64,000 nucleotides of DNA, from the NCBI GenBank assembly GCA_002104905.1, contig MCFE01000078.1:117023-181022 (forward strand), given 5' to 3'. The translations under genes and the position numbers were made by a program. The notes under the pieces are model-generated. The model was not told the DNA's origin and ran no database searches. It saw only the letters and a program-made list of their open reading frames with translations. The stretch is from Basidiobolus meristosporus CBS 931.73 (taxonomy: Eukaryota > Fungi > Basidiobolomycota). Shown in pieces: positions 27,551 to 58,176 of the stretch (position 1 is its first letter; every line of letters starts with the position of its first letter).

Positions 27551-28376
27551 TACCACACATACAGACCAGCCACAACACATTGGAGAAGCCAGAGGTTACC
27601 AAGTAGTTTAGAAGATAATTCAATTCCAAGCTAAATTGGCCCTAACTTGGTCAAGCGGCTCCAAACCTTTCATATAACATCTATAATTAGGTAAATGTCA
27701 GCTTGATCAAACTCCAAGGTATGGGATTTGACTATGTACTCTAATTCCCATATTTGTCAATAGAATTTAGCAAAGTAGTAATAGTGACAACTACTTAGGT
27801 TTATTTACTCATGGTTTACTCACATCGAACTAGTCCACTTTGGTTAGATCATATTATAAGAACTTTGAAATATCCATATCATCTCAACACTATTAAAGGA
27901 TAGTACAGCATGGTTCTAGTTGTTACGGAATTGAGTCACATGGTATATACACTCCCAATGACCCTGTTCCAAAACGGTTCTCAATCGTAGCTTGACCAAA
28001 GACGGTTTGGGCATCCTTTCAGTTTGCAACCTCTATGATCAGTACATGGCTTTATCAATTTAGTAACGTTGTGTCTCCGTATCGGTGATTGTATCTCTGG
28101 TGTATAGAAGCTACCGAACCTTCTAGGTAGTGTAATGTATACTTCGAAATCCACGCTCGGCGTGCTCGTTTCAGCGTACACCATTGTAGCTGATCCCAGA
28201 ATTCATTCGACTGAGGTGATTAGTGACTTCCATATCAAGCGTTATCTGGAGGCGAGAATTGAGAATGGCTTATCTGCGTTTTCTGCATTTAATATTGACG
28301 GGTTAGGATGAAGAATATGCACAATGGAATGCGGAAAAAACATATAATCAGGGTTGAAGAATTGATGGTCATCAAA

Positions 28377-31034
28377 ATGAGGTCTACTGTCGCGCTGGTA
28401 GCCAGCGTATTATTTCTCATCAGTGTTGAGGCACTACCGCAGCCACAACTAAATAATGACATCGGTTCTGGAGAAGCACAGCAGTCATCGATATCAACAG
28501 ATAGATATACACCTGTCCCAACCAAGCTGGTGAAGACAGGTATATGCTCTGCGCCACCAGTTCCCGCAGCTTACACCTCAATCAAGCAAAGACCCACCTC
28601 CAAAAGTACGAAAGAAAGCCCAACAGGGAGCACCTTCGCATCCAATCACCTTACTCCCACATCTAAATTGCGGCTATTAACCACACATTCGGTGCAGAAA
28701 AGTGAATGTTTTCGACCACCGATACCCTCAACACAGGCCGCTGAGCCTCGACCCACCTTGAACAATTCAAGCAGGACGGTGAGCGGTACAACTGCATACA
28801 AAGCGTCACCAATACGAACACGTTCGGTGCCGACAAGTGAATGCTCTCAACCACCAGGACCTCCAACATATTCCACCACTAGCACAGCAAATACCGAGAA
28901 GAGCACACATGTGAAGGCAACAGTAGTGCCCTCATATTCTGCGCGGCAGAGCGAATGCTCTCAGCCACCATCACCCCCAACGTACGCCTCCATTAATCCT
29001 AGACCTACTGCAAAGAGCACTAACGGACTGGAATCCAGAAGCAACATTGAATCCAAGCATGTTACTTCTACACCCAGGGTGTCACTATTGCCAAACCACT
29101 CAGTACAGCAAACCGAATGCTCACAACCACCCGCTCCCCCAGCGTATACTTCCGTTAAACCTGGACCTGCTGAAAAGAGCGCTCAGGAAAGGGTAACAGG
29201 GAGTGAAATCGATTCGAAGCGTCCCACTTCTACATCCAAAGCGCCACTAGTGCCCACACACTCAGCGAAGCAAAGTAAATGCTCACAACCGCCTGCACCC
29301 CCAACGTATACCTCCTCAAGGCTTGGACCTACCGTAAAGAGCGCTCAAGTTAAGCCAACAAGGAGTGGAGTCGACCCAATGCACGGTACTCTTATGTCAA
29401 AAGCGTCACTAGTACCCACGCATTCTGAGCATCAGACCAGGTGCTTGAAGCCACCAGCCCCCCAAACGTATACTTCCCTTGAGCCGAGATCCACTGCACA
29501 GAGCACTCACCGGCTGGCCTCCAGAAGCAACATTGATTCCCCGCATGTTGCTTCTACATCCGTGGTTCCACTAGTGCCCACGCACTCTGTGCAGCAAAGC
29601 GAATGTTCACCGCCACCGGCTCCCCCAACCTATACTTCCATTAAACGTAGCCCTACTGTAAAGAGCGCTCAGGCAAAGGTAACAGGGAGTGAAATCAATC
29701 CGAAGCATGCTACTTCTACATCCACAGCGCCATTAGTGCCCACGCACCATGGGCAGCAAAGCGAGTGCTCACAGCCACCTGCTCCCCCAGCGTATACTAC
29801 CATTAAGCCTAGACCTACTGCTGAGAGCACTCAAAGAAGAGTACCAGGGAGTGAAGTCAATTTCAGGCATGCTTCTTCTGTGTTCAAGACTTCAGTGGTG
29901 CCCACGCATTCTGTGCAGCAGAGCGAATGTTCACCGCCACCAGCTCCCTCAACTTATGCTTCCATTAAGCCAAGACCTACCGCCAAGAGCGCTCATAGAA
30001 TAACAACAGAGGGTGTAATTGATGCCAAGCATGCTTCTTCTGCGTCCCAGACTTCATCAGCCCCCCAAACGTATACTTCCATTAAGCCGAGATCCACTGC
30101 AGAGAGCACTCACCGGCTGGCCTCCAGAAGCAACATTGATTCCCCGCATGTTGCTTCTACATCCCAGGCTTCACTATTGCCCACGCATTCTGTGCAGCAA
30201 AGCAAATGCTCACCACCACCGGCTCCCCCAACGTATACCTCCTTTAAGCCTATACCTACCGTAAAAGGCACCCAAACAGTGGCAACAGAGAGCGAGGTCG
30301 ACTCTATACACGCATCTCCTACTTCAAAGGCCTCACTAGTACCCACGCATTCTGAGCATCAGACCAACTGCTCGCAGCCACCTGCTCCCCCGACGTATAC
30401 CTCCATTAAACCTAGACCTAGTGCAAAGAGCGCCAAGGGAAGAGCAGGAGGGAGTGAAGTCAATTCGAAGCATGCTGCTTCTACATCCAAAGCGCCACTG
30501 GTGCCCATGCACTCAGAGAAGCAAACTGAATGCTCACAGCCACCTGCGCCCCCAACGTATACTTCCATTAAGCCTGGACCGACCGTAAAGAGCACTCAAG
30601 GAGGGGTGACAGGGAATGAAGCCGATACCATGCACGCTACTTCTACATCGAAAGCGTCACCAGTACCTACCCATTCCGAGAGCCAGAGCAACTGCTCACA
30701 GCCGCCCACCCCACCTATTCATACTTCCATTATGTCTAGTCCTACTGCAAAGAGTACTCAGAGAAGGGCCACAGGGAGTGACATTGGTTCCAGGCATGCC
30801 ACTTCTACGTCCGAAGGCAAATTGGTGCCTACACCATCGGTCAAGCAAAGTGAAAGCGCTCAATCTACTTTGCCCTCAACACATGCCACTGGACCTGCTA
30901 TGAAGAGCCCCGGTGACAGGACCACCACTATTTCTACGCCCAAAGTGCCATCAATGCCGACACATTCGGCGCAGAATAGTGAGTGCCCTCAACCACCTAC
31001 ACCACCAACGTACGTTGCTGAGCCGTCCCTATGA
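28377..31034 (+). CDS. Secreted Pro/Ser/Thr-rich 54-aa tandem-repeat protein, copy 1
   Basis: Signal-peptide-like MRSTVALVASVLFLISVEA from ATG 28377; 162-bp repeats HS.QQSECSQPPAPPTYTSIKP; 15 Cys-containing modules. Confidence 0.85.
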   Translation: MRSTVALVASVLFLISVEALPQPQLNNDIGSGEAQQSSISTDRYTPVPTKLVKTGICSAPPVPAAYTSIKQRPTSKSTKESPTGSTFASNHLTPTSKLRLLTTHSVQKSECFRPPIPSTQAAEPRPTLNNSSRTVSGTTAYKASPIRTRSVPTSECSQPPGPPTYSTTSTANTEKSTHVKATVVPSYSARQSECSQPPSPPTYASINPRPTAKSTNGLESRSNIESKHVTSTPRVSLLPNHSVQQTECSQPPAPPAYTSVKPGPAEKSAQERVTGSEIDSKRPTSTSKAPLVPTHSAKQSKCSQPPAPPTYTSSRLGPTVKSAQVKPTRSGVDPMHGTLMSKASLVPTHSEHQTRCLKPPAPQTYTSLEPRSTAQSTHRLASRSNIDSPHVASTSVVPLVPTHSVQQSECSPPPAPPTYTSIKRSPTVKSAQAKVTGSEINPKHATSTSTAPLVPTHHGQQSECSQPPAPPAYTTIKPRPTAESTQRRVPGSEVNFRHASSVFKTSVVPTHSVQQSECSPPPAPSTYASIKPRPTAKSAHRITTEGVIDAKHASSASQTSSAPQTYTSIKPRSTAESTHRLASRSNIDSPHVASTSQASLLPTHSVQQSKCSPPPAPPTYTSFKPIPTVKGTQTVATESEVDSIHASPTSKASLVPTHSEHQTNCSQPPAPPTYTSIKPRPSAKSAKGRAGGSEVNSKHAASTSKAPLVPMHSEKQTECSQPPAPPTYTSIKPGPTVKSTQGGVTGNEADTMHATSTSKASPVPTHSESQSNCSQPPTPPIHTSIMSSPTAKSTQRRATGSDIGSRHATSTSEGKLVPTPSVKQSESAQSTLPSTHATGPAMKSPGDRTTTISTPKVPSMPTHSAQNSECPQPPTPPTYVAEPSL

Positions 31035-31494
31035 AGCGGTAGTGGGAAGTCTAAGGCTAGTGATAGCAATACGCTGCGTCCAAAGCAATAGTGCTCACGC
31101 TCCCTTACTCTGCAGAAAAGTGTATGGTGCCAGTCACGTTTACCCCCACTAAGCTTGAGTGTATCTTGGAGTGGACTATGTCCATCACTGGTACAGAAAT
31201 CATGGGTATAGAAAAAGCGATTTAATAAATACACCAAGCAATTTTAGGATATCAACTAACTACTTCGTCAACGATGTGCTGCGTGCCATTGAGGAAACAA
31301 AATGTGGTCTGGGTTATGTTGATTGATCCCAAAATACAGGTTTTCCTAAGATATCCAAGCGAAATGGAGTAGTGATTAGTCGGCATCAGCGTCTCTCATT
31401 GGGCATGCACTGAGTGATGGAGTAATTCAGAGTGATTAATAATTGATATCTAGTGTTTATTAATGATTGATGTACAGCGTATATTGGTGGAAAT

Positions 31495-32301
31495 TCAAGC
31501 TTTGTTGAACTTGTCGGTGAATGTGTTAACTGTGCAGTAATTGTAAGAATACCAACTGGCGTCATTACGGTTGCAGTACTGGGAAGTCTTGTTGTATCCG
31601 CCCACTGACATCCATGTACCAACACCGTTGTTAGTGATTCCGTAGCCCCAGCATTGGGATTGGTCAACTTGTGTGAAGTCCATGTAGAAGCCGAAGTTGG
31701 GGTAGTTGAAGTCATCGTCCAGCACGCGGTAGGTCATTTCACTGAAGATCCCGGCGGCCATTTGGTTAGTTGGATTCAATATCTTTTGGACCATCTGGTA
31801 ATCCGATAGCAAGTTGTAGCGGCCAAAGTTGCGTCCTCGAATGCTGCTGACGAGCTGCCATTCACTTCCGTCCTTGACATAGGTGGTGAATACGGCATCA
31901 TTGTGAATGAATTCAAGATCAAGTCGGAGGCGGTACTGAACCCCAGCGCGCCAATCGAATGGGATACCAGCATTGATCCAGCCAGAGCCGGTGGAATCTC
32001 CATTTTCACCCACTTTCACCAGCTCCACCGAGGTGTCACCCCCGTTGTTATTCATCCAGAACCTGAGTGATTTTTTGTCGTTATAGTCGTTGGCAAGGTA
32101 GAAGCTGCCGATGTTGAAGTGGAAAGCGACCCACTGAGCTGACTGGACATCATAGCCTTGCGGGACCTCAAGGTTGGTCTCGACTCTGACAATGGGTGGA
32201 ATATTACCCTCCGGGAAGTAGACGTAGTTCAGCAGATTCGATGCCTTTGCCAGCATCGGCAGGATGGTAATGGCACCGGCGAGGATAGTCTTGAACAGCA
32301 T
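31495..32301 (-). CDS. Secreted 268-aa protein, DUF3472-like beta-sandwich (tentative), copy 1
   Basis: Signal-peptide-like MLFKTILAGAITILPMLAKA; intact intronless ORF conserved in four copies; PFDWRAGVQYRL...WQLVSSIR resembles the DUF3472 pattern from memory. Confidence 0.8.
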   Translation of the reverse strand: MLFKTILAGAITILPMLAKASNLLNYVYFPEGNIPPIVRVETNLEVPQGYDVQSAQWVAFHFNIGSFYLANDYNDKKSLRFWMNNNGGDTSVELVKVGENGDSTGSGWINAGIPFDWRAGVQYRLRLDLEFIHNDAVFTTYVKDGSEWQLVSSIRGRNFGRYNLLSDYQMVQKILNPTNQMAAGIFSEMTYRVLDDDFNYPNFGFYMDFTQVDQSQCWGYGITNNGVGTWMSVGGYNKTSQYCNRNDASWYSYNYCTVNTFTDKFNKA

Positions 32302-35300
32302 TTTGATGGTGCTTGATTATCCTCGTCGACGAGTTTATATATACGAGTCCTAATGCGATGGCTTCCGTTTATGACTTTGGATCTATTCATGCCCTTGTTT
32401 AGAAGATGAACCGTCAATGCCGTTATCAGGCTGTTTATCAGAACGAGCTCTTGGAAGGGAATAAATCCTCACCTATCTGCCTGAATTAATCAGAGATCAT
32501 TGTTCGGAAACTTCCTTCCGTGTGATTAGCAACATTCTAATGTCCAACTTTGGGCACTCTTCTACGTAGATTATGCGCCTTGGAATTTCTCTGGATTACC
32601 ACCCCTTCCAGCTTATCTTTGTTTCATATAAATATAATAATACGAGAGTCGTTCCCATCACTGGAGGAGAATTGAGCACTCCATATGGAGGACAGTGGTC
32701 CAAGGACTCGGATGTTTTCCATGTATGATCATTAGTAAATATATCTGCGATAAATTAAGCAATTGATTCCAGATCTGTGATAGTGTCGGAAGTTATTACC
32801 TGATTCATCAAGCATTCATTTGTGAAATGCCCAGACTTCTGCAGTAAAAACCCATCTAGAGCTCACTAATCAGGAAAAGCTATTCCAAATAACGAAAATT
32901 AGAGTGAGCCATCCCAATTGAAACCAGCCGGAATAGATTGCCCTAATTCGATGTGATGCTGAATGAAACGGGCAAGTGTTTGGCTTTCATTGCTCATCAG
33001 TAAAGCTCCGATTGTTCTATATGCTGTGATACCCATCTTCATAAATATATTAGAAATCAATCGAACGTCCTCTTAGAGGTTTAGAAGAGTTGCAGAAGGA
33101 CGGAATGGTGATAACTTCTTCAAAGCTTAAAATGGCCAGGAAGCTTTGAATGTACCCTTCTATGGCGCATTTCTTATTTGTTTTTCTCAAAAATAGCTTC
33201 ACATGTTTGCACCTTATTCTTGTCCTGAAAAGTGAAAATACTCCTAAATCGCATGGCAACCGCCAACATTCACATTATCCAGAAGACACACACTACACTC
33301 TCAACTTCCATGTAGTACTTTGCAGATGAAATAAACATCAATTGACTAGGCAGTGAGTGAGACTGATCAGCAATAGAAGCTCATCCTTTAGCAGACACTA
33401 AGAAACCATAATCACATCCGCAATTTAGTATTGAAGGCATGAAGTATATGCAAATTGGTACATGTGTTATAAGCAATCGGGTATTGCACCCTCCACATGT
33501 TGTTTGATCCGTAGAAAATATTGCCATTGCTAAAACCTGAAATCGGCTTTAAATTGATTACTCTAGTTGTTTTACATACAGACGTTAAGTGAGCGATCCA
33601 TGTTCTTTTGCGGCTCGGCGACACTTCCCACCATCATTGTAGCAAACTAGCATGATCTGTGATGGCAAAGGTTGGGAAACTACAGATTACTTGGGAGCAA
33701 TGTGATTCAAAAGAGAGCGCTCGTGGCTACTCCCCATCATACCTCCTGGAAACTGATTTGAAACGAGATTAACCAAGTTAGTCTGGTCCTCTTCGGTCTC
33801 AACTGCGCCTACGCAAGTAGCTGTCCATATTTCATGATGGAGGTAGTCAAAATGGCTTAAAAAGCAAGGGGAGATAAACCCAACAAGGCTGCAATGGTAT
33901 GACAGTACTCCTGTACAATCAATAACAGCTTGAAACAGAAATAGACCCAGGTTGCTTCGAGACGCCACCGAGTCCTAAGGTCACCTGAAACAGTCGAGCC
34001 AGTAGTAACAATAGCATGGGCCTAGACCATAAAGACCAAAATAGTCTGCTTCCATTAGCTTGGATTCAACGCATGGACCTGGCAGAAATGCGCGGATCAC
34101 CCCACCACTCATACAGCAACTGATTAACCTGTTTAGTTCAATAACAATCGCAGTGAGCTTGTTTGCTTCGATACAGCTCGTGATTAGCTTAATTTTCCGG
34201 ACAAAATGATGATAAACTTCCGTACTGGATGCCACCCATCGAAATCCGCTACACACTGTTCTGGATTACTATCCTTGGAATATCTGGCCGAATCTTTTGC
34301 TAATCTCAAAATGGCACGCTGTAAAATTATTTCAACCTGAACCGGCCCGAAGTTTTATCATCTGGATTCTGTTAGCCAAGTCACGTTATTTCCACAACCG
34401 GGATCTCATAAGTTGGGAGTGGCCATTTATGATTGGTATGCATGCTGATGAAAGCCCGAACTATCGCACATGTCAACACTACCCCCTGAACTTGGGAAAA
34501 ATGACATTTGGAGTCTGGGAGTCAATCGTATGCTTTCTATAGTGTGACTTTTACTTCTGCAGAAAATCATTAAGTTATACGTTTAAACGAGCCATCTCAG
34601 TGTAGCGCTAAGAAAGTAGAGGAAGGTCACATGTCCACTCGGCCATATCGTGTAAGGATGGAGTGTTCTGGAAGAATATGAAAAATTAAAATAGGCTATG
34701 TTAACACACAAATGTAAAGCGATAACATTATCATAGGTGGCTATCATATAACAATGCGCTTCCATTGCATGTTGAGTTGGGGATGCGAAATAAAAGGATA
34801 TGGTGTCTTTAAGGGAATGTTAATCACCAATCGCCAAGATATTTATTTCAATCAATAAGATCAACGAAGTCTGGTATCATTGAGGTATTTCTTTACAAGT
34901 AAATGCAGAGATAAATGGTGATGAGAAAGCTGATTTAGATTGTGGTAGGAGCGAAGTGTCCTGCAAAAGAAAAAGTACAAGACCCAAATGTTGACCAAAG
35001 ATAGGTAAACTACCATAAACCCAACTTACTCGAATATTAGGAATAAGCTGCTAATTTAATGCTCAGGGGACAAGACCAAAAAGAATGCATGAAATGCAAT
35101 GGAAGAAACCTGTCATACATCATCACCGCAAGCTGAGAGCCTTATAGTTATACTTCTATTGCATAATATATTAAGCCCGAAAACGCTTACATCATATTTC
35201 ACTCGCAGCTTACCTGGATCGAACCATTCCACTTTGATTAGATCCAATTTTATGAATTCTGAAATATCCACATCATCTCACCACTATTAAAGGATAGTGC

Positions 35301-35770
35301 ATCATGGTTCTAGTTGTTACGGAATCGAGTCACATGGTATATACACTCCCAATGACCCTGTTCCAAAACGGTTCTCAATCGTAGCTTGACCAAAGACGGT
35401 TTGTGCATCCTTTCAGTTCGCAACTCCTATAATCGGTACATAGCATTATTAATTTAGTAATGCTTGATCGACGTATCAGTGATTGTATCTCTAGTGTATA
35501 GAAGCAGCAGAACCTTCTAGGTGGTGTAATGCATACATCGAAATCCACGCTCGGCATGCTCGACTCAACGGACACCGTTGTAGATGATCCCAGGATTCAT
35601 TCGACAGAGGTGATTAGTGACTTCCATATCAAGCGTTATCTGGAGGTGAGAATTGAGAATGGCTTATCTGCGGTGTCTACATTTAATATTGACGTGTTGG
35701 GATGAAGAATGTGCACAATGGAACGCGGAAAAAACATATAATCAGGGTTGAAGACTTGATGGTCATCAAA

Positions 35771-38356
35771 ATGAGGTCTACTGTCGCGCTGGTAGCCGGC
35801 GTATTGTTTGTCATCAGTGTTGAGGCACTACCGCAGCCACAACTAAATAATGACAGTAACTTGTCATTATTGCCATCTACATCCATTGAGCAAGTCGACA
35901 TCGGTTTTGGAGAAGCACAGCAGTCATCGATATCAACAGATAGATATACACCTGTGCCAACCAAGCTGGTGAAGACAGGTATATGCTCTGCGCCACCAGT
36001 CCCCGCAGCTTACACCTCAATCAAGCAAAGACCCACCTCCAAAAGTACGAAAGAAAGCCCAACAGGGAGCACCTTCACATCCAATCACCTTACTCCCACA
36101 TCTAAATTGCGGCTAGTAACCACGCATTCGGTGCAGAAAAGTGAATGTTCTCGACCACCGATACCCTCAACACACGCCACTGAGCCTCGACCCACCTTGA
36201 ACAATTCAAGCAGGACGGTGAGCGGTACAACTGCATACAAAGCGTCACCAATACGAACACGTTCGGTGCCGACAAGTGAATGCTCTCAACCACCAGGACC
36301 TCCAACATATTCCACCACTAGCACAGCAAATACCGAGAAGAGCACACATGTGAAGGCAACAGTAGTGCCCACACATTCTGCGCGGCAGAGCGAATGCTCT
36401 CAGCCACCAGCGCCCCCAACGTATGCCTCCATTAATCCTAGACCTACTGCAAAGAGCACTAACGGACTGGAATCCAGAAGCAACATTGAATCCAAGCATG
36501 TTACTTCTACACCCAGGGTGTCACTATTGCCAAACCACTCAGTACAGCAAACCGAATGCTCACAACCACCCGCTCCCCCAGCGTATACTTCCGTTAAACC
36601 TGGACCTGCTGAAAAGAGCGCTCAGGAAAGGGTAACAGGGAGTGAAATCGATTCGAAGCGTCCCACTTCTACATCCAAAGCGCCACTAGTGCCCACACAC
36701 TCAGCGAAGCAAAGTAAATGCTCACAACCGCCTGCACCCCCAACGTATACCTCCTCAAAGCTTGGACCTACCGTAAAGAGCGCACAAGTAAAGCCAACAA
36801 GGAGTGGAGTCGACCCAATGCACAGTACTCTTATGTCAAAAGCGTCACTAGTACCCACGCATTCTGAGCATCAGACCAGCTGCTCGAAGCCACCAGCCCC
36901 CCAAACATATACTTCCCTTAAGCCGAGATCCACTGCACAGAGCACTCACCGGCTGGCCTCCAGAAGCAACATTGATTCCAAGCATGTTACTTCTACATCC
37001 GTGGTTCCACTAGTGCCCACGCACTCTGTACAGCAAAGCAAATGTTCACCACCACCGGCTCCCCCAACCTATACTTCCATTAAACGTAGCCCTACTGTAA
37101 AGAGCGCTCAGGCAAAGGTAACAGGGAGTGAAATCAATCCCAAGCATGCTACTTCTACATCATCAGCGCCATTGGTGCCAACGCACCATGAGCAGCAAAG
37201 CGAGTGCTCACAGCCACCTGCTCCCCCAGCGTATACTACCATTAAGCCTAGACCTACTGCTGAGAGCACTCAAAGAAGAGTACCAGGGAGTGAAGTCAAT
37301 TTCAGGCATGCTTCTTCTGTGTTCAAGACTTCAGTGGTGCCCACGCATTCTGTGCAGCAGAGCGAATGTTCACCGCCACCAGCTCCCTCAACTTATGCTT
37401 CCATTAAGCGCAGACCTACCGCCAAGAGCGCTCATAGAATAACAACAGAGGGTGTAATTGATGCCATGCATGCTTCTTCTGCGGCCCAGGCTTCACTATT
37501 GCCCACGCATTCTGTGCAGCAAAGCAAATGCTCACCGCCACCGGCTCCCCCAACGTATACCTCCTTTAAGCCTATACCTACCGTAAAAGGCACCCAAACA
37601 GTGGCAACAGAGAGCGAGGTCGACTCTATACACGCATCTCCTACTTCAAAGGCCTCACTAGTACCCACGCATTCTGAGCATCAGACCAACTGCTCGCAGC
37701 CACCTGCTCCCCCGACGTATACCTCCATTAAACCTAGACCTAGTGCAGAGAGCGCCAAGGGAAGAGCAGGAGGGAGTGAAGTCAATTCGAAGCATGCTGC
37801 TTCTACATCCAAAGCGCCACTGGTGCCCATGCACTCAGAGAAGCAAACTGAATGCTCACAGCCACCTAGGCCCCCAACGTATACTTCCATTAAGCCTGGA
37901 CCGACCGTAAAGAGCACTCAAGGAGGGGTGACAGGGAATGAAGCCGATACCATGCGCGCTACTTCTACATCGAAAGCGTCGCCAGTACCTACCCATTCCG
38001 AGAGCCAGAGCAACTGCTCACAGCCGCCCACCCCACCTATCCATACTTCCGATATGTCTAGTCCTACTGCAAAGAGTACTCAGAGAAGGGCCACAGGGAG
38101 TGACATTGGTTCCAGGCATGCCACTTCTACGTCCGAAGGCAAATTGGTGCCTACACCATCGGTCAAGCAAAGTGAAAGCGCTCAATCTACTTTGCCCTCA
38201 ACACATGCCACTGGACCTGCTAGGAAGAGCCCCAGTGACAGGACCACCACTATTTCTGCGCCCAAAGTGTCATCAATGCCGACACATTCGGCGCAGAATA
38301 GTGAGTGCCCTCAACCACCTACACCACCAACGTACGTTGCTGAGCCGTCCCTATGA
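35771..38356 (+). CDS. Secreted 54-aa tandem-repeat protein, copy 2
   Basis: Very close to copy 1; has a 12-aa N-terminal insertion and lacks copy 1's 36-aa partial module. Confidence 0.85.
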   Translation: MRSTVALVAGVLFVISVEALPQPQLNNDSNLSLLPSTSIEQVDIGFGEAQQSSISTDRYTPVPTKLVKTGICSAPPVPAAYTSIKQRPTSKSTKESPTGSTFTSNHLTPTSKLRLVTTHSVQKSECSRPPIPSTHATEPRPTLNNSSRTVSGTTAYKASPIRTRSVPTSECSQPPGPPTYSTTSTANTEKSTHVKATVVPTHSARQSECSQPPAPPTYASINPRPTAKSTNGLESRSNIESKHVTSTPRVSLLPNHSVQQTECSQPPAPPAYTSVKPGPAEKSAQERVTGSEIDSKRPTSTSKAPLVPTHSAKQSKCSQPPAPPTYTSSKLGPTVKSAQVKPTRSGVDPMHSTLMSKASLVPTHSEHQTSCSKPPAPQTYTSLKPRSTAQSTHRLASRSNIDSKHVTSTSVVPLVPTHSVQQSKCSPPPAPPTYTSIKRSPTVKSAQAKVTGSEINPKHATSTSSAPLVPTHHEQQSECSQPPAPPAYTTIKPRPTAESTQRRVPGSEVNFRHASSVFKTSVVPTHSVQQSECSPPPAPSTYASIKRRPTAKSAHRITTEGVIDAMHASSAAQASLLPTHSVQQSKCSPPPAPPTYTSFKPIPTVKGTQTVATESEVDSIHASPTSKASLVPTHSEHQTNCSQPPAPPTYTSIKPRPSAESAKGRAGGSEVNSKHAASTSKAPLVPMHSEKQTECSQPPRPPTYTSIKPGPTVKSTQGGVTGNEADTMRATSTSKASPVPTHSESQSNCSQPPTPPIHTSDMSSPTAKSTQRRATGSDIGSRHATSTSEGKLVPTPSVKQSESAQSTLPSTHATGPARKSPSDRTTTISAPKVSSMPTHSAQNSECPQPPTPPTYVAEPSL

Positions 38357-38858
38357 AGCGGTAGTGGGAAGTCTAAGGCTAGTGATAGCAATATGCTGCG
38401 TCTTAAGCAATAGTGCGCACGCTCCCTTACTCTGCAGAAAAGTGTATGGTGCCAGTCACGTTTACCCTCACTAAGCTTGAGTGTATCTTGGAGTGGACTA
38501 TGTCCATCACTGGTACAGAAATGAAGGGTATAGAAAAAGCGATTTAATAAATACACCAAGCAATTTTAGGATATCAACTAACTACTTCGTCAACGATATG
38601 CTGCGTGCCATTTGAGGAAACAATACGTGGTGTGGGTTATGTTGATTGATCCCAAAATACAGGTTTTCCTAAGATATCCGAGCGAAATGGGGTGGAGTGA
38701 TTAATCGACATCAGTGTCTCTCATTGGTCATGGGCAAAGTGATAGGTGATCAGTGTCTAGTTGAGCATGCACTGGGTAATGGAGTAATTCAGAGTGATTA
38801 ATAATTGATATCTAGTGTTTATTAATGATTGATGTACAGAGTATATATTGGTGGAAAT

Positions 38859-42600: not shown

Positions 42601-43071
42601 GGGGACAAGACCAAAAAGAATGCATGAAATGCAATGGAAGAAACCTGTCATTCATGACCACCGCAAGCTGAGAGCCATATAGTCATACTTCTATTGTATA
42701 ATATATTAAGCCCGAAAACGCTTATTTAACGATTCACTCGCAAAGGCATTATCATTTAGCAATACTTTATCTCCATATTGGTGATTGTATCTCTGGTGTA
42801 TAGAAGCTACAGAACCTTCTGGGTAGCGGAACACATGCTTGGAAATCTACGCTTGGCATACTTGTTTCAGCGCACACCATTGTTAATGATCCCAGAATTC
42901 ATTCGACCGTGGTGATTTGTGACTTCCATATCAAGCGTTATCTGGAGGCGAGAATTGAGAATGGCTTATCTGCGCATTCTGCACTTAATAATGACGGGTT
43001 AGGATGAAAAATATGCGCAATGGAACGCGGAAAAACAAATAATCAGAGTCGAAGCCTCGATGGTTATCAAA

Positions 43072-45201: not shown

Positions 45202-45653
45202 TGTTCACACTTCTTGTGCAGAAATGTGCATGATCTCAGTCATGTTTACCCGAGCAAACACTTCTGCTGAACTTGATTGTACATATAGTTGGCCATGCCC
45301 ATCACTGTTGCAGAAATGAAGGGTACAGAAAAAGCGATTCAATAAATACACCAAGCCATTTCAGGATATTAACTAACTACTTCGTCAACGATGTGCTGCG
45401 TGCCATTTGAGGAAACAATACGTGGTGTGGGTTATGTTGATTGATCCCAAAATACAGGTTTTCCTAAGATATCCAAGCGAAATGGAGTTGAGTGATTAAT
45501 CGACATCCGTGTCTCTCATTGGTCATGGGCTAAGTGATGGGTGATCAGTGTCTCGTTGAGCATGCACTGGGTAATGGAGTAATTCAGGGCGATTAATAAT
45601 TGATATCTAGTGTTTATTAATGATTGATGTACAGAGTATATATTGGTGGAAAT

Positions 45654-46460
45654 TCAAGCTTGGTTGAACTTTTCGGTGAATTTGTTAACTGTGCAGTGAT
45701 TGTAAGAGTACCAACTGGCGTCATTACGGTTGCAGTACTGGGAAGTCTTGTTGTATCCGCCCACTGACATCCATGTACCAACACCGTTGTCAGTGATTCC
45801 GTAGCCCCAGCATTGGGATTGGTCAACTTGTGTGAAGTCCATGTAGAAGCCGAAGTTGGGGTAGTTGAAGTCATCATCCAGCACGCGGTAGGTCATTTCA
45901 CTGAAGATCCCGGCGGCCATTTGGTTAGTTGGATTCAATATCTTTTGGACCATCTGGTAATCCGATAGCAAGTTGTAGCGGCCAAAGTTGCGTCCTCGAA
46001 TGCTGCTGACGAGCTGCCATTCACTTCCGTCCTTGACATAGGTGGTGAATACGGCATCATTGTGAATGAATTCAAGATCAAGTCGGAGGCGGTACTGAAC
46101 CCCAGCGCGCCAATCGAATGGGATACCAGCATTGATCCAGCCAGAGCTGGTGGAATCTCCATCTTCACCCACTTTCACCAGCTCCACCGAAGTGTCACCC
46201 CCGTTGTTATTCATCCAGAACCTGAGTGATTTTTTGTCGTTATAGTCGTTGGCAAGGTAGAAGCTGCCGATGTTGAAGTGAAATGCGACCCACTGAGCTG
46301 ACTGGACATCATAGCCTTGCGGGACCTCAAGGTTGGTCTCGACTCTGACAATGGGTGGAATATTACCCTCCGGGAAGTAGACGTAGTTCAGCAGATTCGA
46401 TGCCTTTGCCAGCATCGGCAGGATGGTAATGGCACCGGCGAGGATAGTCTTGAACAGCAT
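45654..46460 (-). CDS. Secreted 268-aa DUF3472-like protein, copy 3
   Basis: Intact ORF with only a few substitutions relative to the other copies. Confidence 0.8.
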   Translation of the reverse strand: MLFKTILAGAITILPMLAKASNLLNYVYFPEGNIPPIVRVETNLEVPQGYDVQSAQWVAFHFNIGSFYLANDYNDKKSLRFWMNNNGGDTSVELVKVGEDGDSTSSGWINAGIPFDWRAGVQYRLRLDLEFIHNDAVFTTYVKDGSEWQLVSSIRGRNFGRYNLLSDYQMVQKILNPTNQMAAGIFSEMTYRVLDDDFNYPNFGFYMDFTQVDQSQCWGYGITDNGVGTWMSVGGYNKTSQYCNRNDASWYSYNHCTVNKFTEKFNQA

Positions 46461-49400
46461 TTTGATGGTGCTTGATTATCCTCGTCGACGAGTTTATATA
46501 TACGAGTCCTAATGCGATGGCTTCCGTATACAACTTTGGATCTATTCATGCCCTTGTCTAGAAGATAATCCGTCAATGCCGTTATCCGGCTACTTATCAA
46601 ATCAAGCACCTGGCAGGGCATAAATCCTCACCTATCTGCCTGAATTAATCCGTGATCATTGTTCGGAAACTTCCCTCCATGTGATTAGCTACCTTCCAAA
46701 GTCCAATTTGGGCACTTTATACGTATATTTCAGGTGTTTTCATTTTGTTGGACTGCCCCATATTCTAGCTTATCTTTGCACCACACAAGTAACGAGAACC
46801 ATCGCCATCACTCGAGAAGAATTGAGCACTCCATATGGAGGAGTGGTCCAAGGACTTGAATGTTTTCCATTTATGATCATTAGTAAATATATCTGCGATA
46901 AATTAAGCAATTGATTCCAGATCCGTGATAGAGTAGGAAATTCTTATCTGATTCACTGAGCAATCATTTGCGAAAAAGCCCAGACTTCTGCAGGAAAAAT
47001 TCCATCTCGAGCTTACTAATCGGGAAAAGCTATTCCAAACAACGAAAATTAGAGTGAGCTATCACAGTTGAAACCAGTCGGAATAGACTACCCTAATTCG
47101 ATGTGATGCTGAATGAAACGTGCAAGTGTTTGGCTTTCATTGCTCATCAGTAAAGCACCGATTGTTCTATATGCTGTGATACCCAACTTCCTAAATATAT
47201 TAGAAATCAATCGAACGTCCTCTTAGAGGTTTAGGAGAGTTGCAGAAGGACGGAATGGTGATGACTTCTTCAAAGCTTTAAATGGCCAGGAAGCTTTGGA
47301 TGTACCCTTTTGGCGCATTTCTTATTTGTTTTTCTTAAAAATAGCTTCCCTAAATTACGGTGTAACCACCAATATTCACATTGTTCAGATGACATACGCT
47401 GTACTCTCAACCTCTATGTAGTACACTGCAGTTGAATTGAAACATCAATTTACTAGCCGTTGAGTGAGACTGATCAGCATGAGAAACCTACTCTTCAGCA
47501 AACAGAACTGGACCCTGTTACTCTGGGACACTTGCGAACCCTACGGCCGCTTGGAACGGATAACTCAATATCAACAATAGTATGGGCCTAGACCATAAAA
47601 ACCAAATTAGTCTGCCTCCATTAGCTTGGATTCAACGCATGGACCTGGCAGAAATGCGCGGATCACCCCACCACTCATACAGCAACTGATTAGCCTGTTT
47701 AGTTCAATAACAATCGCAGTGAGCTTGTTTGCTTCGATACAGCTCGTGATTAGCTTAATTTTCCGGACACAATGATGATAAACTTCCGTACTGGATGCCA
47801 CCCATCGAAATCCGCTACACACTGTCCTGGATTACTATCCTTGGAATATCTGGCCGAATCTTTTGCTAATCTCAACAAGGCGCGCTGTAAGATTATTTCA
47901 ACCTGAACCCGGCCCGAAGTTTTATCATCTGGATTCTGTTAGCCAAGTCACGTTATTTCCGCAATCGGGATCTCATAAGTTGGGAGTGGCCATTTATGAT
48001 TGGTATGCATGCTGATGAAAGCCCGAACTATCGCACATGTCAACACTACCCTTTGAACTTGGGAAAAATGACATTTGGAGTCCGGTAGTCTATCTTATGC
48101 GTTCTACAGTGTGGCTTTGACTTTTGGCAAAAGCTAGTATGTTGTACATTCATATGAACCGTCTCAGAGTAGTGTTGAAAAATTAGAGGAAGGTCAATCG
48201 GCTATTCGGTCATATTGTTTGTGTGGGTGGGGTGTTTTGGAAGTATGAGAAATTGAACTAGTATTTGTTAACCTATGAATTCAACGCATTAGCATTATCA
48301 TAGGTGATTGCTATATAGCAATGCGCCTCCAGAGCATGTTCAGGTGGGGATGTGAAACAAATGTACATGAAGTCTTTAGGGGGATGGTAATCACTAAGCG
48401 GTAAGATATTAATTTCAATCAATAAGACCAAGGAAGTCCGATATCATAGAGGTGTTTCTTTACAAATAAATGCAGTAATAATTGTGGTGAGAAAGCTTAT
48501 TTAAATTGTGGTAAGACCAAAGTGTCCTGCAAGAGACACAGTATAAGACGCAAATTATGACCAAAGATAGGCAAACTGCCATAAACTCAACTTACTTGAA
48601 TACTAGGAATAAATTGCTAATTTAATACTCCGGGGACAAGACCAAAAAAATGCATGAAATGCAATGGAAGAAACTTGCCATTCAGGATCAGCGGCTAACA
48701 AGATGCTTTAAAGATGAAAATTCCTCACAACTCAGATGCTCCCAAGCAATGCGCTCAAGAACATAATAGGAAGAATCCATGTGGATGCAAATCATTATCG
48801 AAGAAGTGGCATTTACATTCCTAGATAATATGGCAACCAAAATTGAGATATACAGAAGCACATGGTACTATTAGTATTGCATAGCATTGTGCAAGAACAC
48901 AGACTCTGTAAGTGATGAGTCTGGTAAGGAAATAACTTCAGTTTGGAATATGCATTACGGATGCCCATTTGCGAAAAACCATAAATACAAGACAACCTGC
49001 TTTCATTTGGCTGCAAAAATATTTTGTCTTCCGCAAGCACTATCTTCCCACCGCGATGTGCAAAATACATTTTGTTGTATTGCTTCTGTACAAGCTGAGT
49101 TATATAGTCGTACTTCTATTATACAATACATTAAGCCCGAAAATCCCCACAGTATAATTCACTCGCAGCTTACTTGGATCGAACCATTCCACTTTGATTA
49201 GATCCAATTACAAGAACTTTGAAGTGTCCATATCATAGCACCACTATTGAAGGATAGTGCATCATGCTGCTGATTGTTATGGAATAGTGTTACATGGTAG
49301 ATTCACTCCCAATGAGCCTGTTCCAAAACGGTTCTCAATCGTAACTTGACTAAAGATAGTATGGGCATTCGTTCATTGCTTTATCCCTGTGATCAGTACA

Positions 49401-49729
49401 TGGCATTATCAATTTAGTAATGCTTGATCTCCATATTGATGATTGTATCTCTGATGTTAGAAGCTACAGAACCTTCTGGGTAGCGGAACACATGCTTGGA
49501 AATCTACGCTTGGCATACTTGTTTCAGCGCACACCATTGTTGATGATCCCAGAATTCATTCGACCGTGGTGATTAGTGACTTCCATATCAAGCGTTATCT
49601 GGAGGTGAGAATTGAGAATGGCTTATCTGCGTTTTCTGCATTTAATATTGACGGGTTAGGATGAAGAATATGCACAATGGAACGCGGAAAAAACATATAA
49701 TCAGAGTTGGAGCCTTGATGGTCATCAAA

Positions 49730-52213
49730 ATGAGGTCTACTGTCGCGCTGGTAGCCAGCGTATTATTTCTCATCAGTGTTGAGGCACTACCGCAGTCACA
49801 ACTAAATAATGACAGTGGCTTGCCATTATTGCCACCTACATCCATTAATCAGGTCGACATCGGTTCTGGAGAAGCACAGCAGTCATCGATATCAACAGAT
49901 AGATATACACCTGTGCCAACCAAGCTGGTGAAGACAGGTATATGCTCTGCGCCACCAGTCCCCGCAGCTTACACCTCAATCAAGCAAAGACCCACCTCCA
50001 AAAGTACGAAAGAAAGCCCAACAGGGAGCACCTTCGCATCCAATCACCTTACTCCCACATCTAAATTGCGGCTAGTAACCACGCATTCGGTGCAGAAAAG
50101 CGAATGCTCTCAACCACCGATACCCTCAACACACGCCGCTGAGCCTCAACCTGCCTTGAACAAATCAAGCAGGAGGGTGAGTGCTACAACTGCATCCGAA
50201 GCGTCACCAATACGAACACATTCGGCGCCGACAAGCGAATGCTCTCAACCACCGGAACCTCAAACGTATTCTTCCACCAGGACAACAAATACCGAGAAGA
50301 GCACACGTGCGAGGGCAACAGTTGTGCCCACACATTCTGAGCAGCAGAGCCAATGCTCACAGCCACCAGCGCCTCCAACGTATGCCTCCATTAAATCTAG
50401 ACCTACTGCAAAGAGCATTAATGGGCAGGCGTCCAGAAGTAACATTGATTTAAAACATGCAAATTCTATGTCCAAAGCTTCACTGATGCCCACGCATGCG
50501 GTGCAGCAGAGCGAATGTTCACCGCCGCCCGCTCCCTCAACGTATGCTTCCATTAGGCCTAGACCTTCTGCAAAGAGCGCTCGGGAAAGGGTAACAGGTA
50601 ATGAAATCAATTCGAGGCATGCTGCATCTGCATCTGCATCCGAAGCACCACTAGTACCCACGCACTCGGGGCAGCAAACCGAGTGTTCACAGCCACCTGC
50701 TCCCCCAACGTATACCTCCTTTAAGTCTATACCTACCGTAAAAAGCACTCAAACAAGGGCAACAGAGAGCGAAGTCGGCTCTATACATGCAACTCCTACT
50801 TCAAAAGCCTCACTAGTACACACGCGTTCCGAGCAACACACCAGCCTCTCACAGCCACCTGCTCCCTCAACCTTTACTTCAATTGAGCCTCAACTCACTG
50901 CTAAGAGCGCTCAGGAAACAGTAACAGCGAGTAAAATTAATTCGAAGCATGCTACATCTATATCCAACACACCACCAGTGCCCACACACTCAGAGCAGCA
51001 AACTGAATGCTCACAGCCACCTACACCCCCAACGTATACTTCCGTTAAGCCTCAACCCACTGCTAAGAGCGCTCAGGGAAGAGCCGTACGAAGTGAAATC
51101 GAATCCAGAACTGCTACTTCGGTGTCCAAGGCTTCACTGATGCCCACGGATTCCTCTCAGCAGAGCGAATGTTCACAGCCACCAGCTCCCTCGACGTATA
51201 CTTCTATTAAACCTAGAACTACTGCAAAGAGCACTCAGGAAAGGGTAACAGGGAAGGAAATTAATTCGAAGCATGCTACTTCTACATCCCAAGCGCCACT
51301 AGTGCCAACGCACTCGGGGCAGCAGAGCGACTGCGCACAGCCCCCTACTCCCACATTATATACTACCATTAAGCCTAGGCCTTCTGCAAAGAGCTCTCAG
51401 GGAACGGCAGCAAGGAGTGAAATCAATTCCAGGCATGCTTCTGCGTCCCAGGCTTCACTAGTGCCTACGCATTCGGCGCAGCAGAGCATATGTTCACCGC
51501 CACCCGCTCCCCCAACGTATACTTCAATTAAGCCCAAACCTACTGCCAAGAGCGCTCAGGAAAAGGTAACAGGGAGTAAAATCAATTCGGAGCAGGCTAC
51601 ATCTATATCCAACGCACCACCAGTGCCCACACACTCAGGGCAGCAAACTGAATGCTCACAGCCACCTAGGCCCCCAACGTATACTTCCGTTAAGCCTGGA
51701 CCTACCATAAAGAGCACTCAAGGAGGGGTGACAGGGAATGAAGCCGATACCATGCGCGCTACTTCTACATCGAAAGCGTCACCCGCACCCACCCATTCGG
51801 AGAAGCAGAGCAACTGCTCACAGCCGCCCACTCCACCTACCTATACTTCCATTATGTCTAGACCTACTGCAAAGAGTACTCAGAGAAGGGCCACAGGGAG
51901 TGACATTGGTTCCAGGCATGCCACTTCTACGTCCGAAGGGAAATTGGTGCCTAAACCATCGGTTAAGCAAAGTGAAAGCGCTCAATCTACTTTGCCCTCA
52001 ACACATGCCGCTGGACCTGCTATGAAGAACCCCGGTGACAGGACCACCACTATTTCTACCTCCAAAGTGACATCAATGCCGACACATTCAGTACAGGATA
52101 GCGGATGCTCCCAACCACCTACACCCCCAACATACGTTGCTGAGCCGTCCCCAAGAAACGGCAGTGGGATGTCCAAAGCTAGTAATAGCAATACGCTGCG
52201 TCCAAAGCAATAG
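49730..52213 (+). CDS. Secreted 54-aa tandem-repeat protein, copy 4 (divergent central modules, full-length C-terminus)
   Basis: Same signal peptide and termini; 13 Cys modules; ends PRNGSGMSKASNSNTLRPKQ. Confidence 0.85.
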   Translation: MRSTVALVASVLFLISVEALPQSQLNNDSGLPLLPPTSINQVDIGSGEAQQSSISTDRYTPVPTKLVKTGICSAPPVPAAYTSIKQRPTSKSTKESPTGSTFASNHLTPTSKLRLVTTHSVQKSECSQPPIPSTHAAEPQPALNKSSRRVSATTASEASPIRTHSAPTSECSQPPEPQTYSSTRTTNTEKSTRARATVVPTHSEQQSQCSQPPAPPTYASIKSRPTAKSINGQASRSNIDLKHANSMSKASLMPTHAVQQSECSPPPAPSTYASIRPRPSAKSARERVTGNEINSRHAASASASEAPLVPTHSGQQTECSQPPAPPTYTSFKSIPTVKSTQTRATESEVGSIHATPTSKASLVHTRSEQHTSLSQPPAPSTFTSIEPQLTAKSAQETVTASKINSKHATSISNTPPVPTHSEQQTECSQPPTPPTYTSVKPQPTAKSAQGRAVRSEIESRTATSVSKASLMPTDSSQQSECSQPPAPSTYTSIKPRTTAKSTQERVTGKEINSKHATSTSQAPLVPTHSGQQSDCAQPPTPTLYTTIKPRPSAKSSQGTAARSEINSRHASASQASLVPTHSAQQSICSPPPAPPTYTSIKPKPTAKSAQEKVTGSKINSEQATSISNAPPVPTHSGQQTECSQPPRPPTYTSVKPGPTIKSTQGGVTGNEADTMRATSTSKASPAPTHSEKQSNCSQPPTPPTYTSIMSRPTAKSTQRRATGSDIGSRHATSTSEGKLVPKPSVKQSESAQSTLPSTHAAGPAMKNPGDRTTTISTSKVTSMPTHSVQDSGCSQPPTPPTYVAEPSPRNGSGMSKASNSNTLRPKQ

Positions 52214-52670
52214 TGCTCACGCTCCCTTACTGTGCAGAAAAGTGTATGGTCTCAGCCACCTTTACCCCCATAGACACTTCTGTTGAACTTGAGCGTACGT
52301 TGGAGTGGACTATGTCCATCACTGGTACAGAAATCACGGGTATAGAAAAAACGATTTAATAAATACACCAAGCAATTTTAGGATATTAACTAACTTTTTG
52401 GTCTACGATGTGCTGCGTGCCATTTGAGGAAACAATTCGTGGTGTGGGTTATGTTGATTGATCCCAAATAACCGGTTTTCCTAAGATATCCAAGCGAAAT
52501 GGAGTTGAGTGATTAATCGACATCCGTGTCTCTCATTGGTCATGGGCTAAGTGATGGGTGATCAGTGTCTCGTTGAGCATGCACTGGGTAATGGAGTAAT
52601 TCAGAGTGATTAATAATTGATATCTAGTGTTTATTAATGATTGATGTACAGAGTATATATTGGTGGAAAT

Positions 52671-53477
52671 TCAAGCTTGGTTGAACTTTTCAGTGAATTT
52701 GTTAACTGTGCAGTGATTGTAAGAATACCAACTGGCGTCATTACGGTTGCAGTACTGGGAAGTCTTGTTGTATCCGCCCACTGACATCCATGTACCAACA
52801 CCGTTGTCAGTGATTCCGTAGCCCCAGCATTGGGATTGGTCAACTTGTGTGAAGTCCATGTAGAAGCCAAAGTTGGGGTAGTTGAAGTCATCGTCCAGCA
52901 CGCGGTAGGTCATTTCACTGAAGATCCCGGCGGCCATTTGGTTAGTTGGATTCAATATCTTTTGGATCATCTGGTAATCCGATAGCAAGTTGTAGCGGCC
53001 AAAGTTGCGTCCTCGAATGCTGCTGACGAGCTGCCATTCACTTCCGTCCCTGACATAGGTGGTGAATACGGCATCATTGTGAATGAATTCAAGATCAAGT
53101 CGGAGGCGGTACTGAACCCCAGCGCGCCAATCGAATGGGATACCAGCATTGATCCAGCCAGAGCCGGTGGAATCTCCATTTTCACCCACTTTCACCAGCT
53201 CCACCGAAGTGTCACCCCCGTTGTTATTCATCCAGAACCTGAGTGATTTTTTGTCATTATAGTCGTTGGCAAGGTAGAAGCTGCCGATGTTGAAGTGAAA
53301 TGCGACCCACTGAGCTGACTGGACATCATAGCCTTGCGGGACCTCAAGGTTGGTCTCGACTCTGACAATGGGTGGAATATTACCCTCCGGGAAGTAGACG
53401 TAGTTCAGCAGATTCGATGCCTTTGCCAGCATCGGCAGGATGGTAATGGCACCGGCGAGGATAGTCTTGAACAGCAT
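52671..53477 (-). CDS. Secreted 268-aa DUF3472-like protein, copy 4
   Basis: Intact ORF with only a few substitutions relative to the other copies. Confidence 0.8.
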   Translation of the reverse strand: MLFKTILAGAITILPMLAKASNLLNYVYFPEGNIPPIVRVETNLEVPQGYDVQSAQWVAFHFNIGSFYLANDYNDKKSLRFWMNNNGGDTSVELVKVGENGDSTGSGWINAGIPFDWRAGVQYRLRLDLEFIHNDAVFTTYVRDGSEWQLVSSIRGRNFGRYNLLSDYQMIQKILNPTNQMAAGIFSEMTYRVLDDDFNYPNFGFYMDFTQVDQSQCWGYGITDNGVGTWMSVGGYNKTSQYCNRNDASWYSYNHCTVNKFTEKFNQA

Positions 53478-54997
53478 TTTGATGGTGCTTGATTATCCTC
53501 GTCGGCAAGTTTATATATACGAGTCCTAATGCGATGGCTTCCGTATACAACTTTGGATCTATTCATGCCCTTGTCTAGAAGATAATCCGTCAATGCCGTT
53601 ATCCGGCTACTTATCAAATCAAGCACCTGGCAGGGCATAAATCCTCACCTATCTGCCTGAATTAATCCGTGATCATTGTTCGGAAACTTCCCTCCATGTT
53701 ATTAGCTACCTTCCAAAGTCCAATTTGGGCACTTTATACGTATATTTCAGGTGTTTTCATTTTGTTGGACTGCCCCTTATTCTAGCTTATCTTTGCACCA
53801 CACAAGTAACGAGAACCATCGCCATCACTCGAGAAGAATTGAGCACTCCATATGGAGGAGTGGTCCAAGGACTTGGATGTTTTCCATTTATAATCATTAG
53901 TAAATATATCTGCGATAAATTAAGCAATTGATTCCAGATCCGTGATAGAGTAGGAAATTCTTATCTGATTCACTGAGCAATCATTTGCGAAAAAGCCCAG
54001 ACTTCTGCAGGAAAAATTCCATCTCGAGCTTACTAATCGGGAAAAGCTATTCCAAACAACGAAAATTAGAGTGAGCTATCACAGTTGAAACCAGTCGGAA
54101 TAGACTACCCTAATTCGATGTGATGCTGAATGAAACGTCCAAGTGTTTGACTTTCATTGCACATCAGATAGCTCGGATTGATTCATATAATGATATTCTA
54201 AACTGATATCATGGTAAACAATAAAAGGAACTATTAATGGATAATAATGAGTAGAGTTGACAAATTTTGTCGAAGTTATCCAATAGCGACAAGGCTTTGC
54301 ATGTACCTTCTATAGCTCATTTTTGTATATTTTTACCAAAATAACATTAAATGTTTGCACCTTGCACTTATCTTGAAAAGTTTAAGTACTCATAAATCAC
54401 GGTGCAACCACCAATATTCACATTATTCAGATGACAAACGCTATACTCTCAACCTCAATGTAGTACTCTGCAGTCGAATTGAAACATCAATTTATTAGCC
54501 GTTGAGTGAGACTGATCAGCATGAGAAACCTACTCTTCAGCAAACAGAACTAGACCCTTGTTACTCTGGGACATTTGCGAGCCCTAAGGCCGTTTGGAAC
54601 AGTTGACTCAATATCAACAATAGTATGGGCCTAGACCATAAAAGCCAAATTAGTCTGCTCCCATTAGCTTCGATTCAACGCATGGACCTGGCAGAAATAT
54701 GCGGATCACCCCGCCACTCATACAGCAACTGATTAGCCTGTTTAGCTCAATAATAATTGCAATGATTTTGTTTGATTTGATACCGCTCGCCATTAGCTTA
54801 ATTTTCCGGACAAATTGATGATAAACTTCCGTACTGGATGCCACCCATTGAAATCTGCTACACATTGTCCTGGATTACTATCCTGTAATATCCGGCTAAA
54901 ACCTATGTTAGTCTCAAAAACTCACATTGTAATATTATGTCAACCTGCAGCTAGCACAAGGTTGTATTGTCTGGAATCTGTTAGCCAAGTCACTTAG

Positions 54998-55347: not shown

Positions 55348-55359
55348 GGTTATGAGCCC
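55348..55359 (+). promoter_or_regulatory. Primer-binding site GGTTATGAGCCC (copia-type, internal/half tRNAi-Met priming)
   Basis: Directly after the LTR; resembles the Drosophila copia PBS GGTTATGGGCCC. Confidence 0.75.
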
Positions 55360-58103: not shown

Positions 58104-58176
58104 GGAGGAAAGTCACCAAGTGGTGAAATCTTTATTTACTTATGACAAGTATCTAAAGAAGCCAAGTTAATCTGAA
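58104..58176 (-). mobile_element. 5'-truncated 3' end of SINE-like element B, flanked by TTAGGG on both sides
   Basis: Identical to 62174-62245; preceded by GGGTTAGGG (58095-58103) and followed by TTAGGGTTAGGG (58182-58193). Confidence 0.85.

Follow-up and report, generated by a model that had tools for sequence, protein, structure and literature searches.

We examined a 64,000-nucleotide stretch of the genome of the gut fungus Basidiobolus meristosporus CBS 931.73 (contig MCFE01000078.1, positions 117,023 to 181,022; hereafter the window), and self-BLAST of the window revealed four head-to-tail units of ~7.3 kb each. Every unit carries two convergent intronless genes whose N-termini, judged by eye, resemble signal peptides: gene A, which encodes a protein built from 54-residue repeats, and gene B, which encodes a protein of 268 residues. 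We conclude that gene B represents a divergent and probably non-catalytic offshoot of the fold of the di-glutamate mucinases, co-duplicated with an orphan mucin-like gene, gene A, in a concertedly evolving subtelomeric array. The sequences flanking the genes split the units into two clades, units (1,2) and units (3,4). An initial annotation, made from the letters of the DNA, had described a two-gene array of four units, and self-BLAST together with four intact 268-residue open reading frames (ORFs) bears this out. The same annotation had recognized no described system with this pairing, a statement that needs correction because the product of gene B is a divergent DUF3472 protein with relatives (see below).

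We found that gene B encodes a very divergent DUF3472 protein and is not an orphan. DUF3472 had no assigned function until 2024, when the di-glutamate mucinases were defined through HC7; the original study is reportedly that of Narimatsu et al. (2024, Nat Catal), as cited in PMC13003899. HC7, from Bacillus cereus, is a di-glutamate mucinase (PMC13003899) and the sole characterized DUF3472 enzyme; its substrates, which it both binds and cleaves, are mucin domains with dense O-glycosylation. A word-index search with the 268-residue protein recovered only the protein itself, and a metagenome scan for close relatives of the gene returned none. Run exhaustively against 1.84 billion representatives, phmmer recovered eight relatives, the best at 42% identity; the protein matched the paralogue P0002 at 1e-66, and the named relatives are all from B. 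meristosporus CBS 931.73 or B. ranarum. All eight exceed the gathering cutoff of PF11958 (DUF3472), with scores of 40-194 bits against a cutoff of 24.8. A profile of ten canonical members scored the gene B protein at 120 bits over residues 3-258, that is, from end to end, and the family profile matched the solved DUF3472 structures 4qhw (1e-28) and HC7 (8pmu; 5e-13). For the gene B protein the ESM Atlas likewise, and independently, points to DUF3472, at 0.96.

For structural comparison we used an AlphaFold (AF2) model built from a nine-sequence alignment (predicted local distance difference test score, pLDDT, 76.5; predicted template modeling score, pTM, 0.78), which replaced a single-sequence model with a pLDDT of 34. 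Foldseek matched the model to DUF3472 structures with E-values of 9e-13 to 3e-10. In the VIA comparison, the model matched 4qhw at Z 24.5 and chains of 8pmu, 8pn3 and 8pn5 at Z 23.2-23.5, with root-mean-square deviations of 2.3-2.8 over 212-217 residues. The next structural tier consisted of neprosin (Z 12.8), scytalidoglutamic peptidase (Z 11.0), GH16 glucanases (Z 11-13) and galectins (~9). The product is acidic (predicted isoelectric point, pI, 4.8) and single-domain, with three Cys, an odd number, and inspection of its signal-like N-terminus suggests that it is secreted.

Gene B shares the DUF3472 jelly-roll fold with HC7 of B. cereus K8 (8pmu, 8pn3, 8pn5; 212 residues superposed), and both proteins are secreted, that of gene B by prediction; the ligand class of HC7 is mucin-type glycopeptide. 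However, structure-based identity is only ~12%, one protein is bacterial and the other fungal, and HC7 has a CBM5 accessory module, whereas gene B is single-domain with no further Pfam domain. The top structural and profile match of the gene B domain is BACCAC_02064 (4qhw) of Bacteroides caccae, a DUF5077-DUF3472 protein described as a "putative two-domain sugar hydrolase". Its function is putative, and unlike gene B it retains the two conserved Glu and has an additional domain at the N-terminus. Canonical Basidiobolus DUF3472 paralogues agree with gene B in genus, family, predicted secretion and approximate domain length, but they keep the EGTG and FLEN motifs and reach 130-190 Pfam bits, and gene B does neither. 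In centipede venom (PMC7864903), this mostly bacterial domain was likewise recruited by a eukaryote and tandemly duplicated into a secreted repertoire, although those genes are animal, contain introns, often occur with DUF5077 and have no mucin-like neighbor described for them.

To place the catalytic residues, we relied on HC7. When the wild-type 8pmu sequence was compared with that of the Glu200Ala mutant 8pn3, Glu200, the proven catalytic Glu, turned out to be the E in FQEDW; the corresponding family motif is YQFLEN. Gene B reads YQMVQK at this site, giving Gln172, in all four copies. Apart from this one, HC7, 4qhw and the canonical fungal proteins have a single conserved Glu in common, that of FGxEGTG (E131 of HC7 by our count), and its conservation suggests that it would be the second catalytic Glu of HC7. 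In gene B the corresponding loop is four residues shorter, and Ile109 takes the aligned position, or Gly105 when the count runs gapless from Trp117; neither is an acid. Because both conserved Glu are replaced, gene B is likely non-catalytic. The sister paralogue P0002 (ORX91636.1, K493DRAFT_339238) also lacks both Glu, and the next clade (P0003, P0010 and P0004, the last being ORX73419.1 and ORX99532.1) retains Glu and Asp at the two positions. In the phylogenetic tree, the window protein and P0002 are sisters (99/97) within a divergent clade (99/99), and the branch of the window lineage is 1.09 long versus 0.14 in P0002. The double loss is common to both sisters and is therefore old. An old loss followed by faster evolution of a protein that is still constrained is the mark of a pseudo-enzyme that has taken on a new role, probably in binding. 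Judged by these substitutions, gene B probably acts as a pseudo-mucinase, or lectin, that recognizes a glycan or glycopeptide ligand but does not cleave it. If this is true, a fungal DUF3472 branch that is without both Glu yet under selection is a natural enzyme-turned-binder, and such proteins would be useful as mucin-domain probes.

Other DUF3472 genes of the genus differ in architecture and setting. In B. meristosporus, outside the window, DUF3472-hevein (CBM18) fusions (P0007 and P0013-P0015) have both conserved Glu (EGTG and FLEN) and, unlike gene B, bear a chitin-binding module. CBM5, the accessory module of HC7, is also a chitin-binding family, and by analogy the fusions are candidate active mucinases for chitin-associated mucins, such as those of the insect peritrophic matrix. 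The B. ranarum homologues P0003, P0010 and P0008 lie on very short contigs of 3.9-6.1 kb, which is what short-read assembly would give if these genes, too, sit in repetitive or tandem DNA that interrupts it. Homologues in B. ranarum include KAK9692826.1 and KAK9681139.1.

Gene A is probably an orphan mucin-like protein of the wall or matrix, predicted to be heavily O-glycosylated. Its product consists of a 170-residue head, 11-12 modules of 54 residues (a period of 162 nt) and a hydrophilic tail. Each module has one Cys and a Pro-rich core of the PPAPPTY type, and the whole is 44% Ser, Thr and Pro and basic, with a predicted pI of 9.8. The true start is probably the Met of MRST rather than the first ATG, and a public 194-residue model also begins with MRST; the N-terminus, MRSTVALVASVLFLISVEA, is signal-like by inspection, which suggests that the product is secreted. 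Indels between the intact copies are all in frame (15 and 39 residues in unit 2 versus unit 1), and the ratio of nonsynonymous to synonymous differences (pN/pS) is 0.50-0.63, with 0.63 for unit 2 versus unit 1 and 0.5 for unit 4 versus units 1 and 2. From the in-frame indels and these ratios, we conclude that gene A is a real coding gene. Neither Pfam nor the ESM Atlas contained a relative of gene A, and word searches with the full length and with an N-terminal piece gave no other relative among the matches listed (8,000 low-complexity candidates). The sole match was K493DRAFT_347709, the 194-residue spliced fragment model, on the same contig as the window. Since only this fragment model is public, the full-length gene A copies of 2.5-2.7 kb are effectively unannotated, an annotation gap that leaves them missing from public protein collections.

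The initial annotation had called the repeat gene variable in module content and dead in unit 3, and both observations stand. The intact copies differ by the in-frame indels described above. The unit 3 copy drops out of frame near 44003-44069, runs into stops at 44243 and 44435 in the shifted frame, and comes back into frame near 45013-45055. Between clades, head and tail are well preserved, but the central modules differ strongly, with a synonymous divergence (pS) of 0.28. This value is above the flank divergence, which argues for module shuffling by unequal recombination and not for diversification by point mutation. We conclude that gene A evolves under weak constraint and module shuffling, with one copy dead. 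The diversification proposed for it earlier is correct as to drift and shuffling, but the pN/pS values (0.5-0.6) indicate relaxed purifying selection and do not support diversifying selection.

Yeast FLO and Candida EPA and ALS are subtelomeric adhesin families with variable internal repeats. Gene A resembles them in being subtelomeric, in having Ser/Thr-rich tandem repeats that vary by recombination, and in having pseudogenized copies. Unlike them, gene A is co-duplicated with a second, unrelated secreted gene, and a Pfam scan and inspection of the sequence found neither a C-terminal glycosylphosphatidylinositol (GPI) signal nor an N-terminal ligand-binding domain in it. A GPI-anchored adhesin was rejected as a reading of gene A, because the C-termini are hydrophilic and lack a GPI-type signal.

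The pairing of a mucin-like gene A with a probably disabled mucinase-fold gene B is suggestive. With gene B identified as a DUF3472 protein, the mucin specificity of HC7 makes a concrete hypothesis of the earlier idea that the array encodes a scaffold and a binding or processing partner. The functional-module reading keeps its footing in the co-duplication of the genes, in the contrast between an invariant and a drifting gene, and in the DUF3472 nature of the partner; with both Glu replaced, that partner is unlikely to be a processing enzyme, and a binding role is the better supposition. In a true functional pair, the acidic pseudo-mucinase B would specifically bind, cross-link or organize the basic O-glycosylated polymer A, so that the two form an adhesive coat or a secreted matrix; amplification of the block would then reflect the need for both together. 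HC7, the characterized relative of B, was crystallized with tri- and tetra-glycopeptides in its cleft and cleaves mucin domains, and the neighbor of B is mucin-like. The predicted charges of the products are opposite (pI 4.8 for B versus 9.8 for A), unpaired Cys are possible on both (three Cys in B, one per module in A), GATA-type 8-mers are kept in both promoters in all units (4 shared versus 0.58 expected), and the pair has been retained through at least two duplication rounds. However, the arguments from charge, Cys and motifs carry little weight, and unit 3 combines a dead gene A with an intact, converted gene B. The searches that were run found no gene A relatives, hence no second linked locus is known. 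In addition, fungal O-glycans are mannose-based, unlike the GalNAc substrates of HC7, which counts against B binding A. By analogy with HC7, it is possible that B binds the product of A, but a true functional pair in the full sense above is on balance unlikely.

The promoter motifs were considered separately. Upstream of gene B (32600-32760; all four units), GATA-type motifs occur as AGATAAGC at ~-317 and CGCAGATA at ~-440. In the gene A promoter (28260-28280; all four units), the reverse complement of AGATAAGC and CGCAGATA forms one 11-mer at ~-106. Only two or three independent conserved GATA-type 8- to 11-mers are common to both promoters. This may be a weak hint of common GATA-factor control of the two genes, and we rejected a claim of co-regulation as too weak on two or three independent motifs.

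The functional pair has a more elaborate version, in which a gut fungus produces both a mucin-like polymer of its own and a catalytically disabled mucinase-fold lectin that recognizes the polymer, the two genes forming a co-amplified chromosome-end module whose binder evolves in concert. We regard this version as quite unlikely. If true, it would provide the first described pseudo-mucinase and a novel type of secreted two-component system for matrix formation or adhesion. The position of gene B next to a mucin-like gene makes the ligand hypothesis directly testable.

Gene B could also still be a glycopeptidase or glycosidase that works through another catalytic arrangement (e.g., Gln172 and another acid, on the model of Gln/Glu glutamic peptidases) and processes the gene A product or host or prey glycoproteins. 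Its fold is common to the glutamic peptidases (neprosin at Z 12.8 and scytalidoglutamic peptidase at Z 11.0) and GH16 enzymes, the protein is under purifying selection (see below), and P0003 and P0004 of the sister clade have Glu plus Asp at the two sites. However, both family Glu are replaced in gene B, and the loop at the EGTG site is shortened and acid-free at the aligned position. In HC7, E200A alone is enough to trap substrate, according to the PDB titles, and the long gene B branch (1.09 versus 0.14) fits a change of function. We therefore consider retained catalysis improbable, and prefer a non-catalytic gene B.

The uniformity of gene B results from gene conversion bounded by the coding sequence (CDS; +/- ~50 bp) plus purifying selection. 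The initial annotation had noted that the 268-residue gene is intact and nearly invariant in all copies; indeed, the ORF is open in all four units and the proteins are 97-99% identical. Between clades, the CDS diverges by 1.4-1.6%, compared with 10-13% for the 3' flank and 13-15% for the 5' flank. In the comparison with flanking DNA that the initial annotation had proposed beforehand, CDS identity (98.4-98.6%) is thus well above that of the flanks (85-90%). Synonymous divergence of gene B between clades is 3-4.7% (5-8 of 169 sites) versus ~13% for the flanks (~145 of 1,130 sites; Fisher p-value of 3e-5 to 2e-3). Since synonymous divergence, too, falls below that of the flanks, selection to preserve the protein cannot by itself account for the uniformity. 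The block of high identity reaches ~50 bp past the CDS on each side and then ends. All four gametes are present among the copies for codons 59 and 195, and codon 262 pairs units (1,3) against units (2,4). The synonymous deficit and these incompatible site patterns indicate repeated gene conversion restricted to the gene B CDS. Of the 18 variable codons, nine are nonsynonymous versus ~14 expected (p-value = 0.006), a deficit which shows that purifying selection acts too. Variable residues 100 and 105 lie in the remodeled loop, and residue 171 adjoins Gln172. The invariance of gene B comes from CDS-bounded conversion and purifying selection; dosage selection, which had been proposed for it, is not supported. 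That strong purifying selection alone, or an assembly artefact copying one gene, accounts for the near-identity with no gene conversion is highly improbable: nonsynonymous changes are under-represented and subtelomeric repeats carry a risk of mis-assembly, but synonymous divergence is 3-4x below flank divergence and the copies carry mutually incompatible site patterns, for which we rejected selection alone, and the copies differ at 18 codons within flanks that are 10-15% apart with indels, unlike a collapsed or duplicated assembly, for which we rejected assembly duplication. The array is a clean case of gene conversion confined to coding sequence inside diverging subtelomeric repeats.

Taken together, we favor, with moderate confidence, an explanation that combines a subtelomeric array, a mucin-like gene A, and a converted, non-catalytic gene B with the DUF3472 fold. 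Several points weigh against it. Against Pfam, the 268-residue protein matched no family at E <= 1 and did not reach the PF11958 gathering score, and as there is no direct match, membership in DUF3472 rests on transitive and profile evidence. The alignment behind the gene B model consists of DUF3472 proteins, which makes the fold match not fully independent. The second catalytic Glu of HC7 was identified by conservation only, and the gene B alignment near the EGTG Glu is uncertain owing to the four-residue loop deletion. Eqolisin glutamic peptidases use a catalytic Gln/Glu dyad, and given this analogy (fold Z 11 here) Gln172 would not be strict proof of inactivity. Finally, the adjacency of A and B is one ancestral event copied four times (n = 1), which also counts against a functional pair.

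The locus is a subtelomeric tandem segmental duplication. The TTAGGG telomere lies 9-36 kb from the tandem array, and the subtelomeric setting given by the initial annotation agrees with the TTAGGG repeats at the end of the window. Self-BLAST and unit alignments showed mosaic identity and large indels in the intergenic DNA, the latter as had been noted before. A single four-fold amplification, however, does not describe the array: units (1,2) and units (3,4) are separate older lineages, exchange among the units has been mosaic, and a retrotransposon truncates unit 4. An ancestral block of ~7.3 kb underwent one duplication long ago, which gave the ~13% flank divergence; both daughter blocks duplicated anew, giving ~3% divergence; and the units became mosaic through later unequal crossing-over and gene conversion. 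Compared over the equivalents of 31000-31440 and 32345-33030, units 3 and 4 are 11.1% apart in the 3' flank of gene B but 2.5% apart in its 5' flank, a contrast that places exchange breakpoints at or within gene B.

Features of the array and its borders, in window coordinates
Feature	Coordinates	Strand	Remarks
Unit 1	27824..35217		7.4 kb; self-BLAST 27824-28461 vs 35218-35855 (91%) and vs 49178-49814 (88%)
Unit 2	35218..42744		Closest to unit 1; 97-98% identity over genes and most of spacer (self-BLAST)
Unit 3	42745..49102		Shorter; repeat gene dead; self-BLAST
Unit 4	49103..54996		Spacer shortened by copia-like element; self-BLAST 35143-37941 vs 49103-51903
Gene A (mucin-like, 54-residue repeats), unit 1	28377..31034	+	885 residues from MRST; open frame from 28308 (908 residues)
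Gene A, unit 2	35771..38356	+	861 residues from MRST; open frame from 35702 (884 residues)
Gene A, unit 3, pseudogene	43072..45201	+	Frame lost, internal stops
Gene A, unit 4	49730..52213	+	827 residues from MRST; open frame from 49661 (850 residues); different C-terminal tail
Gene B (divergent DUF3472, 268 residues), unit 1	31495..32301	-	Gln172 at HC7 Glu200 position
Gene B, unit 2	38859..39665	-	Intact ORF
Gene B, unit 3	45654..46460	-	Intact despite dead neighbor
Gene B, unit 4	52671..53477	-	Intact ORF
Non-coding spacer, unit 1	32302..35770		Carries the promoters of genes A and B; units 2 and 3 have comparable spacers
Copia-type retrotransposon	54996..58145	+	Distal boundary of array; Retrotran_gag_2, rve, gag_pre-integrs; gag and integrase domains from 55730
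Inverted copia relic	26641-27420	inverted	Aligns with 55795-54996 at 78% (self-BLAST)
TTAGGG telomere repeats	63880..64000	+	Window end

Within a unit, 460 bp separate the stop of the repeat gene from the convergent 268-residue ORF. The 3.4-kb spacer contains no ORF above 93 residues, which rules out a third gene within it, and the window holds no extra copies of either gene outside the array. The array ends at 54996, the start of the copia-like element, and further retroelements follow distally. On the centromere-proximal side are genes for prolyl-tRNA synthetase, the beta subunit of phenylalanyl-tRNA synthetase (PheRS) and a mitochondrial carrier, as well as DM9 and LtrA-like genes. Three successive ORFs at 23809-25502 (+) match consecutive parts of the LtrA (PF06772) model, and they are probably one intron-containing gene for an LtrA-like membrane protein, with no further ordinary gene between it and the array. 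A direct repeat of 530 bp with 98.7% identity (1-530 and 3524-4052) occurs close to a DM9-repeat gene (1682-2146, minus) and is unrelated to the A-B array.

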